A DNA stretch of 40,911 nucleotides from Octopus bimaculoides (lineage: Eukaryota): assembly GCF_001194135.2 (NCBI RefSeq), contig NC_068982.1, positions 154,816,409 to 154,857,319 of the forward strand, read 5' to 3'. The first letter of the stretch is position 1; each line of letters begins with the position of its first letter. A model generated the notes under the pieces. The model saw only the letters and a program-made list of their open reading frames with translations. It did no database searches and was not told the DNA's origin. Shown one piece after another: positions 21,525 to 25,486 of the stretch. Made by a program: the position numbers and the translations under genes.

Positions 21525-21574
21525 ATTATTATTATTATTATTATTATTATTATTATTATTATTATTATTATTAT

Positions 21575-24253
21575 ACACTCAACAGATTAGACTGTTGGAA
21601 AAGAAAAGAAACCTGACATCGGGTTACAACAAGTAGCCTTAGATGCCAAGAACCCTCCTATTGGATTACAGGAAATAACCTTAAATGCCAAAAACCCTCC
21701 TAAGTATCCTGGTTGTCCCTAATAACACTGTTTGCTACAGCTGTACTAAACTGGATTTCATGCCTTCTTCCTCTATCCATCTGTTCAGATCTGCAGGAAT
21801 AGTTCCCAATGCACCTATAATTACTAGGATACATTTTACCCGCACTTTCCATAGTCTCAGTAATTCAATAACTAGTTCCTGGTATTTTGCTATTTTTTTT
21901 ATACTTCTCATATTAATTGTTTCATTATTTGGGACTGTAAAGTCAATTATCCGGCACTTTCTATTCTCTGTATCTACTACTACCAAATCAAGCCTTCTAG
22001 CTTCTATTACTCTGTCAGTCTGAATCTTAAAGTCCCACAACCCTTGTATTTTTCTAGTATTTTACTATGTTCATGTTCATACCATTTTTCAGTATGTTCA
22101 AGTCCTAGCTTTCTACATAGTGCCCAGTGGATTGCTCTCCCTAAACTGTCATGTCTGTTCTTGTATTCTTTCTGTGCCAGCATGCTACATTCACTTACTA
22201 TATGAGTAAAGCTTTCCTCTTTTGATGGGTATAATCTACATCGGGAATCTACTTGGTTTTTGTCAATCTTGGCTTTTATCTCATTAGTCCTTAATGCTTG
22301 ATCTTGTGAAGCTACTAACAAACTGCAGCCATAACCACGTCTCACTACTACTATTTGCTGAAAATTTCCTTGGGAATCTACCATGAAACGCCTTCTGCCA
22401 GCCAGATAATTTCTGTTATTTTTTCTGGGTTTTAACTTCGTTTCGTGTTTTGGTTTCTCTGTTTTGCTGTGTGTGAATTTAACAGCTTTTAATAAACTTT
22501 CTTCACTATTATATCTACTCTAGCTAACTCCACACAGTCTTCTACTGATATTAACCCTCTTCCACTTTCCTTTCTAGGTAGGTATAATCTTGCTACTCCT
22601 GCCCTTGGGTGGAGTCCTCCGTTTATATTGAATTCTTTCCTAGTTCTTCTGTCTAGCTTTGCTAATTCCGTTTTTGTCCAATCTACAAAAGCTGCTGAGT
22701 ATCTAAGTAATGATACTGCCCAAGTATTTACAGCCTTCACTGGATTCGGACCATTTAGCTTTGATTTCATTAGTTTCCTCACCCTTCTAATGCACACCTT
22801 CTCAATATTCGTTTTCATTTCTGTAGTTAGTACCCTAATACTCCTAGATACTCATAACTCTCTCCTCCTTTCAATGATTTTAATGTCTGGCCATCTGGTA
22901 ATTGGATGCCTTCGCTGTCGATTACCTGTCCTCTTCTCATGACAAATATTGCACACTTATCTATGCCAAATTTCGTGCTTATATTTTTACTGAAGGTTCT
23001 TAAGTCTGTATTAAGGAAGCTATCTCTTTTTTCTTCTTACTAACAAGCTTCAGATCATCCATGTCGACAAATGGCTGATTTTTCCATTACTATTTCTGAA
23101 CTGATACCCTGCCTTTGCTTTCCTTAATACTAAACTGAAGACATAAGACAAATATTAAAGGAGACAACGAAGTCCCCTGGAAAATTCTTCTTTTGGTATC
23201 AACTTTCCCTAAGAGTGTTTTGCCTGAGTAGAGATCTACTTTCCATTTCTTCATGCTAAAGCTAATTAATTCTCTTGTATTGTCTGTTATACTGAATATA
23301 CTCAGGCATTCACTTATCCATGAGTGTGGGATCATGCCATAGGCTTTCCTATAATCTATCCATGCTATTGTTAGGTTTTTATTTCCAGCTTTTACTTCAT
23401 CTAGAAATGCTTTGTCTATATATAATAGATCATGCGTTCCTCTAGCCTTCTTCCTGCAACCTTTCTGTTCTTCTGGTAGTATATTCTTGGTTGTCAAGGT
23501 GCTCGCAAATGCTTTCTGAAGGCATTCCTGTTAACAGCTTCCAAACTAATGGTAAGCAAGTGATTGATCTATAGTTGCTAGCTGTATTACCCTTGCTCTT
23601 ATCTTTCATAATGAGTATTGTCCTCCCTCTAGTTATCCAGTCTAGCAATCCTCCATTTAGGCAATCCTGAAGTTGTCCCTTCAGCCTTCCATGTAAACTA
23701 CTGAATTTCTTTAGCCAGTACCCTTGAACTAAATCTGGTCCTGGGCCCTTACAATTCGGCATTTTCCCTAACACTTTACTCATTAATACACTAGTTAATC
23801 TTAGATTTGGCTGCTCACTTACTACTTCTTGCCTCGCTTTCTGTAATCATACTGCATCTTCATTATGATTGACTGGTTTATCCCAAACATTACTTAAGAA
23901 CTTTCGAGCTTCCTCTGCATTAGGTTTCTCATCTCCAGGACTTCATTCTCCACTATTTATATGGTAATAAAATCTCCTCTGGTCTGTCTCAAATAATCTA
24001 TTCTGTTGATACTGATCTATTCTTTTCTGATATCCGGAGTATTGTCCCAAATTGTCCTTTGACTAAGTATCTTTCCGCGAAGTAAGATTTGCACCTTGTG
24101 TTTACTAACTTGTTTGTTTGCCAGGCTTCTATTCTACCCAGATTTTGTCTTAATGTCTTCACTTTATTTTGTAGTCTCCTTTACCACATCTGCTCTTTTT
24201 TAAATCTTTCCTTGTGAGATATCTAATCTCTTAGTGACTCCTATCCCTCCTGC
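21575..24253 (-). mobile_element. Dong/R4-clade RLE non-LTR retrotransposon, copy 1 (5'-truncated, frameshifted RT-zinc knuckle-RLE)
   Basis: QNRLFETDQRRFY; KGPGPDLVQGYWLK; NYRSITCLP; EEQKGCR; WIDYRKAY; [10 protein letters not shown]; MDDLKL; LHPRAGVARLYLPRKESGRGL; QDQALRTN; CRLY..E..HIVSEC; LWDFKIQTD..RRLDLVVVD..KKIAKY..IGALGTIP. (TAA)n on both sides (21525-21574, 24254-24411). Confidence 0.92.
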
Positions 24254-24411
24254 ATATTATTATTATTATTATTATTATTATTATTATTATTATTATTATT
24301 ATTATTATTATTATTATTATTATTATTATTATTATTATTATTATTATTATTATTATTATTATTATTATTATTATTATTATTATTATTATTATTATTATTA
24401 TTATTATTATT

Positions 24412-24621
24412 GCCTTTACATAGCTTCTAACGCTGGAGATGTACTGCGGTGTCAGCTGTTCACTACCAGTGAACTAAGGTAACACCTCTTATTTTTCGAG
24501 CACCTTCCGGAATATTCGGGCGGTTCCAAGCAGTGCTGTTTTCTGCAAGTGCTCCACCCTTATTGCAGTCCCTATTTGTTCCAGGTACTTCTCGAGATTT
24601 TTACTCACTGCGTACTTTTCG
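24412..24621 (-). mobile_element. Dong/R4-type RLE retrotransposon, copy 2 (3'-terminal ~210 bp)
   Basis: Collinear with the 3' end of copy 3; (TAA)n on both sides (24254-24411, 24622-24690). Confidence 0.85.
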
Positions 24622-24690
24622 ATTATTATTATTATTATTATTATTATTATTATTATTATTATTATTATTATTATTATTATTATTATTATT

Positions 24691-25400
24691 GTCTTTGCAC
24701 AGTTTCTAACGCTGGAAATATACTACGGTGCCAGTTGTTCACTACCATTGAACTGAGGTAACACCCCTTACTTTTCGAGCACCATCCAGAGTATTCGAGC
24801 GGTTCCAAACAGTGCTGTTTCTGCAAGTACTCCACCCTTATTGCAGCCCCTATTTGTTCCATGTACTTCTTAAGACTTTTACTCACTGTTCCCAGAGCTA
24901 CGACAATTATTGGTATTACTATCATCTTTTTCATCGACCACAACTACTTAACCTCCCATGCTAACCTGTCATATCTATTGACTTTTCTTTCTTCCTTGTT
25001 GCATACCTTGTTATCAGCTGGGCGTGCTATATCTGTACTCCAGCATCATTTACTTTCTTTCTCAATTAACACTGTCTGGATCCTAATCTCTATGTCATGG
25101 TCGCACTGAATCATAAAATCCCGTAGGATCTTTGCATTATCATTTTCGATGATGCTTTCGGGTTTGTAGTCGTACAATTTTTGCTCTGTCAAGTTCATAC
25201 TTATTGCAAAGTGTCCAATGGACAAGCCTGGCTATATTGTCGTGGCGTCTCTTATATTCCTTCTGGGCTAGTGGCGTACATTGACTGGTAATATGCTATT
25301 CGGTTTCACCATTTTGTCCACAAATTCTGCACTTATCACTTTCTGATGTGTTGTCTATTCTGTATTTGATGTAATTTGTTCTTAATGCTTGGTCTTGGCT
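24691..25400 (-). mobile_element. Dong/R4-type RLE retrotransposon, copy 3 (zinc knuckle plus RLE, 5'-truncated)
   Basis: QDQALRTNYIKYRIDNTSESDKCRICGQNGETE*HITSQCTPLAQKEYKRRHDNIARLVHW...IVVALGTVSKSL; (TAA)n on both sides (24622-24690, 25402-25467). Confidence 0.9.
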
Positions 25401-25486
25401 TTTATTATTATTATCATTATTATTATTATTATTATTATTATTATTATTATTATTATTATTATTATTAGGATTATTAGGATTATCAA

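Follow-up and report, generated by a model that had tools for sequence, protein, structure and literature searches.

A head-to-tail array of three dead Dong-clade retrotransposon fragments between TAA microsatellites in Octopus bimaculoides

Introduction

Dong elements are retrotransposons without long terminal repeats (non-LTR) that encode a reverse transcriptase (RT) and a C-terminal restriction-like endonuclease (RLE), and their RNA ends in (UAA)n. In long interspersed nuclear elements (LINEs) of the RLE type, the target is nicked by the endonuclease, and the 3' OH then serves as primer for copying the element RNA into DNA, a process called target-primed reverse transcription (TPRT). Targeting of (TAA)n by Dong has been published for insects, molluscs, cnidarians and an ostracod (PMC7998251; PMC3812793), and R4/Dong elements are described as having a single open reading frame (ORF) of about 1100 aa, no N-terminal zinc fingers and only a very divergent Myb/SANT domain (PMC7998251). 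The Dong element of Bombyx mori carries at its 5' end a self-cleaving ribozyme, similar to that of hepatitis delta virus (HDV), which cuts at the TAA/element junction (PMC3774820). A full-length Dong is part of the repeat library of Octopus bimaculoides (Albertin et al., as described in PMC9115989) and was reported to lack signs of having been active recently. Here we analyse a 40.9-kb stretch of this octopus genome (NC_068982.1, positions 154,816,409 to 154,857,319; hereafter the window), in which three 5'-truncated fragments of the R4/Dong clade, all long dead, lie head to tail between TAA microsatellites.

Results

Architecture of the array

Microsatellites in the window were delimited with Tandem Repeats Finder and by direct reading. 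Four tracts of the AAT class bound three fragments of 2680 nt (21575-24254), 210 nt (24412-24621) and 711 nt (24691-25401), and six-frame translation confined the coding similarity of all three to the minus strand. The fragments, called copies 1 to 3, were mapped by tblastn onto P0001, an intact relative of 1118 aa. From left to right the array reads as follows.

21525-21574, unstranded: (ATT)16.7, 100% pure; on the minus strand the (AAT)n 3' tail of copy 1, and also the expected place of the (ATT)/(ATC)n-type 3' tail of the repeat to its left (see below)
21575-24254, minus strand: copy 1, Dong clade, family A, 5'-truncated near residue 232 of about 1120 (Pfam, tblastn to P0001, blastp to Dong references, neighbour-joining tree)
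21680-21575, minus strand: 3' untranslated region (UTR) of copy 1, 106 nt
22040-21684, minus strand: RLE and C-terminus of copy 1, weak match to L_protein_N (the PD-(D/E)xK endonuclease of bunyavirus L proteins)
roughly 22324-22052, minus strand: CCHC knuckle of copy 1, weak zf-RVT match
roughly 24032-22522, minus strand: RT of copy 1, Pfam RVT_1, E=6e-9
24255-24411, unstranded: (TAT)52.3, 100% pure, separating copies 1 and 2; minus-strand tail of copy 2
24412-24621, minus strand: copy 2, Dong clade, family B, starting near residue 1079 and holding the last ~39 codons (tblastn, global alignment)
24488-24412, minus strand: 3' UTR of copy 2, 77 nt
24622-24690, unstranded: (ATT)23, 100% pure, separating copies 2 and 3; minus-strand tail of copy 3
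24691-25401, minus strand: copy 3, Dong clade, family B, 5'-truncated near residue 905, with CCHC knuckle, degenerate RLE and C-terminus (tblastn)
24767-24691, minus strand: 3' UTR of copy 3, 77 nt
25402-25476, unstranded: (TTA)25, 91% matches, the sole impure tract, broken by TCA and two AGG; putative remnant of the target 5' of copy 3

Each copy runs through its stop codon and 3' UTR, and the 5' truncation points differ, each abutting a TAA tract directly. Copies 2 and 3 have 87.8% identity over a 197-nt stretch that takes in the 3' UTR, for a Jukes-Cantor (JC) distance of 0.13; in the global alignment about 11 nt at the 5' end of copy 2 find no counterpart in copy 3. Copy 1 and copy 3, in contrast, share 38% protein identity and are essentially unalignable as DNA, having only a 47-nt patch in common. 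Copy 1 has accumulated at least seven in-frame stops and eight frame changes, and copy 3 three stops and two frame changes. Judged from their sequence, the fragments are thus three dead, 5'-truncated copies of two families (A, copy 1; B, copies 2 and 3) in one orientation. When stitched across its frame changes, the translation of copy 1 retrieves hundreds of proteins that are about 1120-1140 aa long and lie mostly on 3.6-4-kb contigs, with a best identity of 52%; that of copy 3 matches Dong-like C-termini at up to 66% identity, with no named octopus protein among the matches.

These results uphold the anatomy that an initial annotation had proposed from the letters alone, namely three head-to-tail minus-strand copies between four TAA tracts, with different 5' truncations abutting TAA and a 3' UTR that is common to copies 2 and 3 and different in copy 1. 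Its span of 21525-25467 was correct at the start and too short at the end, since (TTA)25 extends to 25476.

The window is very rich in microsatellites (94 Tandem Repeats Finder rows). Even so, a regular-expression scan of all 40.9 kb found no AAT-class microsatellite of at least six units beyond the four of the array, so that the association of Dong with TAA is not due to chance. No further TAA-type Dong fragments were found elsewhere in the window.

Clade assignment

Since the database matches carried almost no names, the named elements used for comparison come from the RLE-LINE alignment in the supplement of PMC5678591. In blastp, the stitched copy 1 scored highest with the mosquito element DongAa (264 bits, E=1e-82), followed by Bombyx Dong (234) and Ascaris R4 (154). 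Scores were far lower for Utopia (78), NeSL (73), R2 (43-61) and HERO (at most 60), and against CRE, too, copy 1 scored far below Dong/R4. A neighbour-joining (NJ) tree of 561 trimmed columns with 16 references, rooted on CRE, placed copy 1 and eight intact homologues beside insect Dong, then R4, with a bootstrap of 88/100 and separate from R2, HERO and NeSL/Utopia; it is a distance tree with a decayed query. Copies 2 and 3 carry no RT and were assigned to the clade through their C-termini alone.

Twelve intact relatives conserve FMDD, and the motifs CRxC...H...C (the CCHC motif) and RRPD...IID...EK do not vary among them; in copy 1 these two motifs are degenerate, with RRLD in place of RRPD. 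Five intact relatives (1118-1175 aa) gave no Pfam match to an apurinic/apyrimidinic endonuclease (APE) domain (Exo_endo_phos), and their N-terminal 450 aa gave no zinc-finger or Myb match at E<=1, which agrees with the published description of R4/Dong (PMC7998251). These N-terminal features are read from the relatives only, as all the window copies lack the N-terminus. The closest solved structures to copy 1 are those of R2 (9nl2, 9dou, 8gh6; E=1e-30), over the RT only.

By sequence, the fragments are RLE-type non-LTR retrotransposons of the R4/Dong clade, the type to which the initial annotation had assigned them. Membership of the R2 clade is ruled out by the R2 scores of 43-61 bits against 234-264 for Dong, by the separate clade in the tree, by the microsatellite target and by the lack of N-terminal zinc-finger and Myb matches in the relatives. 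An I-clade or other APE-type LINE with a (TAA)n tail is likewise ruled out, because the five intact relatives have a C-terminal RLE instead of an APE domain.

Target and arrays in relatives

All three window copies carry sense-strand (TAA)n at both the 5' and the 3' junction. A metagenome scan provided 80 relative loci, 60 of them with a complete 3' end and 29 complete at the 5' end. A sense-strand (TAA)n of at least four units begins 60-270 nt past the ORF in 34 of the 60, and (TAA)n lies just upstream of the element in 13 of the 29, many of the remainder being contigs that end at the element ends. In one full-length relative (L001) the element is directly preceded by (ATA)23 and ends in (AAT)4; in another (L002) the corresponding tracts are (TAA)11 and (AAT)8. 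A minority of relatives (L026, L043, L045, L036, L038, L041, L055, L048) have other sense-strand tails, (TTA)n or (ATT)n, (TTATT)n, poly(A) or (ATG)n, which means that the clade includes lineages with other targets and that target or tail has been switched within it.

Other organisms have head-to-tail arrays too, on contigs that are free of gaps and measure 12.7 kb to 4.4 Mb. A gap-free part of a 3.35-Mb contig (L085) reads (TAA)35, a copy covering aa 89-1118, (TAA)44, a copy covering aa 279-1118, and (TAA)37, the two copies being only ~65% identical to each other. Within 12.5 kb of a 4.36-Mb contig (L087) there are five 5'-truncated copies, each flanked by TAA tracts, and one of them is 75-80% identical in DNA to window copies 2 and 3. 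Tandem copies are also present in L086, again with TAA at the junctions, and in L088, L006 and L048; among the seven relatives with sufficient flanking sequence, only L002 has a solitary copy. The array in the window is a typical case of this general pattern, which, given its presence in gap-free contigs, is independent of short-read assembly.

In eleven of 16 full-length relatives the first bases, right at the TAA/element junction, belong to a conserved block consisting of GCGCCAGTGGTG, a variable hairpin and CTAATATCGGCTTGGTGCCCGACGCTTCACTGGACC.

Relatives with the conserved 5' block, starting at the TAA/element junction: L008-L011, L013, L014, L017-L019, L022, L076

The block contains the crossing complementarities GCG/CGC and CCAG/CTGG, and one compensatory change is seen in a TCGG/CCGA stem (L008). 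The block is thus a candidate for a ribozyme that cleaves itself, as the one of Bombyx Dong does. Rfam found no 5' HDV-like ribozyme in 15 full-length relatives, a weak negative given how narrow the Rfam HDV models are. The window copies, all 5'-truncated, do not reach this end of the element.

SINE-like flanks

BLAST of the flanks against the window, and an alignment of the resulting copies, revealed an interspersed repeat of ~190 nt resembling a short interspersed nuclear element (SINE), with eight copies in the window, one of them on each side of the array.

21333-21524, plus strand: left-flank SINE-like copy, near full-length, its body ending exactly where (ATT)16.7 begins
25477-25650, plus strand: right-flank SINE-like copy, 5'-truncated, its 5' end abutting (TTA)25 and a degenerate ATT-like tail following it
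2566-3165; 8957-9150; 18925-19100, minus strand; 35870-36045, minus strand: SINE-like copies elsewhere in the window

At the tail position other copies have TTATT or TTATC followed by ATT/ATC-type triplet tails, for example (ATC)17(ATT)4 at 18860-18925 on the minus strand. A SINE-tail-SINE arrangement that contains no Dong is found at 2566-3165, and the downstream copies of such tandems are 5'-truncated. Since the SINE body ends where the tract starts and other copies have their tails there, the simplest state before insertion would be SINE, (ATT)n, SINE, with the Dong copies later placed within the tail of the first SINE; the left copy, through its (ATT)n tail, probably supplied the initial target. 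The Dong copies are antisense to the SINEs because the SINE tail is ATT and the Dong tail TAA, each on its own sense strand.

Mobilisation of the SINE by Dong was considered and rejected, as the SINE 3' region has no similarity to either Dong 3' UTR and the tails are complementary. ARAGORN and Rfam, run on the whole window, returned nothing, and no tRNA head could be assigned to the repeat; a literature search with strings of its sequence yielded no matching paper. Long triplet repeats of other classes also adjoin SINE-like copies, namely (TAC)80 at 2253-2492, (TAG)21.7 at 21217-21281 and (ATG)17.7 at 18870-18922.

Assembly quality

Nine runs of N of variable length, often beside simple repeats, are present in the window (3355-3721, 6425-6512, 9692-9772, 15348-15836, 16787-16822 and four of 10-19 nt). 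They mark the assembly as scaffolded and probably built from short reads. Some of its joins, and the lengths of its repeats, are estimates, and the size given for the 157-bp tract is not to be trusted. As that tract probably exceeds the length of a short read, the join between copies 1 and 2 is the least secure of the array. The internal tracts total 276 bp, all of it pure, where a divergence of ~6% per family-B copy, if it holds, would predict roughly 17 substitutions. Either turnover by slippage keeps the tracts young or the assembler idealised them.

Other features in the window

A second, distant RLE-LINE lineage is represented at 9822-10141 on the plus strand by an intact C-terminal piece of 105 codons, with 29-37% identity to Dong-like C-termini. 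Its truncated 5' end abuts (CATA)12, just past an N gap, and on its other side come degenerate CATA and then (ACAG)13 (flanks 9773-9821 and 10142-10261). Its closest named relative is a hypothetical protein of Octopus vulgaris (77% identity). A copy in O. vulgaris (L083), which shares 80% DNA identity with the window across 489 nt, has (CCAT)n(ACAT)n on one side and (ACAT)n on the other, and the flanks of a relative from another organism (L084) are (TTAC)n tracts. From these flanks the lineage looks specific for tetranucleotide microsatellites. Separately, an unbroken ORF of 177 codons is found at 26186-26719 on the plus strand, 0.7 kb to the right of the array.

Discussion

We consider it likely that the locus is a graveyard of three dead, TAA-specific non-LTR copies of the R4/Dong clade, produced through seeding of the target by a SINE tail, TPRT and further insertions from two families. 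What we infer here is how many events there were and in which order, the SINE-tail origin and the annealing of the tail. The starting point would have been two tandem plus-strand SINE-like copies joined through the (ATT)n tail of the first. A Dong endonuclease would have nicked the TAA repeat, and the exposed TTA strand could have paired with the (UAA)n tail of the RNA and primed TPRT; reverse transcription would often end early, leaving 5'-truncated copies. Annealing of the tail would also set the direction of insertion, so that all TAA-tailed Dong elements in one microsatellite would be parallel, here antisense to the SINE. Each insertion would split the repeat and add its own TAA tail, such that n insertions would give n+1 tracts and the site would stay targetable. 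Further insertions, by family A (copy 1) and family B (copies 2 and 3), would then have built the head-to-tail array. Later the copies would have decayed, while the tracts may have been kept pure by replication slippage (or by the assembler). The differing truncation points, the two families and the 12% divergence of copies 2 and 3 favour separate events.

Several points weigh against this history. A single locus does not reveal in which order three insertions took place or whether they were independent, and copies 2 and 3, being of the same family, may have arrived together. Heavy decay of the copies contrasts with the 100% purity of the three internal tracts. The 157-bp tract is probably longer than the reads of what is a gapped and presumably short-read assembly, so the join across it may be the assembler's choice. 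The SINE-tail origin is based on position and on eight diverged copies, and the last 15 nt before (ATT)16.7 fit the SINE consensus poorly. Finally, cleavage of a (TAA)n duplex by the endonucleases of families A and B, and TPRT from it, are predictions made by analogy with the clade.

An array of this kind could also arise in a single integration, if in one TPRT event on a family-A RNA the RT switched, at the broken 5' end, onto the (UAA)n tail of one family-B RNA and from there onto another, before the cDNA was joined to the target. The related R2 RT is known to make end-to-end template jumps in vitro. Such a concatemer would account for the uniform orientation, for the TAA tract at each 5' truncation (it could be the tail of the next template), for the origin of copies 2 and 3 in one family and for the about 11 unmatched nt at the 5' junction of copy 2. 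We nevertheless think it unlikely, because copies 2 and 3 are 12% apart (JC 0.13), which is compatible with different ages, because the tracts between copies are long (23-52 units), and because arrays of other organisms combine families of only ~65% identity and run to as many as five copies, which accretion explains more easily. Unequal crossing-over as the source of a tandem duplication is rejected, as the copies differ in truncation point and in family. It returns, together with chance nesting, in the proposal that there is no target specificity at all and that the TAA tracts are mere 3' tails, comparable to the (TAA)n tail of the I factor. A reading as 3' tail does fit three of the four tracts, and TAA-repeat ends are known in I-clade LINEs (PMC3747384). 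The outermost copy, however, has TAA on its 5' side too (25402-25476), (TAA)n lies directly upstream of the 5' ends of full-length relatives, the relatives searched lack an APE domain and the RT groups with Dong/R4 rather than with APE-type LINEs; unequal crossing-over, moreover, would copy whole units and not vary the truncation points. We regard a lack of specificity as highly improbable.

The remaining concern is that the array is in part an artefact, in which Dong insertions from separate TAA loci were joined, or tract lengths invented, when TAA repeats collapsed in a short-read graph. The nine variable-length N runs are typical of mate-pair scaffolding, the internal tracts are perfectly pure where comparable tracts of gap-free contigs show single interruptions, a pure repeat of 157 bp is probably beyond one short read, and the joining of any two Dong loci would give a consistent orientation. 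On the other hand, there are no Ns within the array, three of its four tracts (50-75 bp) could be spanned by reads of 100-150 nt, and the outer flanks make biological sense as a SINE-SINE tandem. The same architecture is present in gap-free contigs of 12.7 kb to 4.4 Mb (L085, L087, L086, L088), which removes the need for an artefact. Partial misassembly seems quite unlikely to us. From this locus by itself, sequential insertion, one-step template jumping and partial misassembly are not separable.

Sequential insertion from two families, the history that we favour, also bears on the proposal of the initial annotation that at least two families had repeatedly hit a self-renewing landing site. 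The two families are confirmed and similar arrays stand in gap-free contigs; repeated hits would explain them, but one TPRT event with template jumping would give the same structure. By analogy with those arrays, the landing-pad interpretation is a reasonable one, and the coupling to microsatellite abundance that the annotation also raised is a hypothesis. To what had been proposed before, the present analysis adds the tail of the SINE-like repeat as the probable seed of the target, and the finding that all copies are long dead.

The array is real but ordinary for Dong, and the biology behind it is already known, TAA targeting having been published (PMC7998251; PMC3812793), in line with the initial annotation. 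Its value lies mainly in annotation, where the locus should be masked as LINE/Dong-R4 fragments and simple repeats, with SINE copies flanking. The recurrence of head-to-tail arrays in unrelated genomes also suggests that microsatellite-specific LINEs may accrete at a few sites rather than spread over all available repeats. In addition, the target was probably supplied by the tail of another retroposon, which would link the fates of a SINE and a LINE that share no common tail. A more far-reaching, three-way feedback can be imagined for this microsatellite-rich genome, in which (ATT)n tails of abundant SINE-like repeats would serve as antisense landing pads for Dong, insertions or template jumps would add TAA, and TAA microsatellites and Dong arrays would grow together and add measurably to the microsatellite load, the arrays being in vivo footprints of template jumping by the RT of RLE-type LINEs; we consider this speculative and doubtful.

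Among described systems, the Dong elements of Bombyx mori and of mosquitoes (DongAa, DongAg) are the most similar to the window copies. They have the same architecture of RT, CCHC and RLE, (TAA)n on both sides and a TAA 3' tail; Bombyx Dong and DongAa are the best BLAST matches (234-264 bits), and insect Dong is the NJ sister group of copy 1. Protein identity, however, is only about 31% over the RT-linker region, and the window copies are 5'-truncated and dead. The Dong of the octopus repeat library and DongBg of Biomphalaria glabrata are mollusc members of the same clade, compared here by description only. The lack of evidence for recent activity of the library element fits the decay seen in the window. 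R4 of Ascaris and other nematodes belongs to the same clade, has the same domain order and is the third-best reference (154 bits), but it inserts in 28S ribosomal DNA (rDNA) and not in microsatellites, and it branches outside the group of Dong and the window copies. R2 is likewise an RLE-type LINE that uses TPRT at a specific repeated target, but has N-terminal zinc-finger and Myb domains of its own and a 28S rDNA target. Simple repeats serve as landing site or 3' tail also for Kibi, Koshi, Waldo, Mino, Togen (NeSL group) and the I factor (PMC3812793; PMC4640811; PMC3747384); of these, Togen differs from the octopus copies in its (TG)n target, and Kibi, Koshi, Waldo, Mino and the I factor differ in being APE-type elements of other clades.

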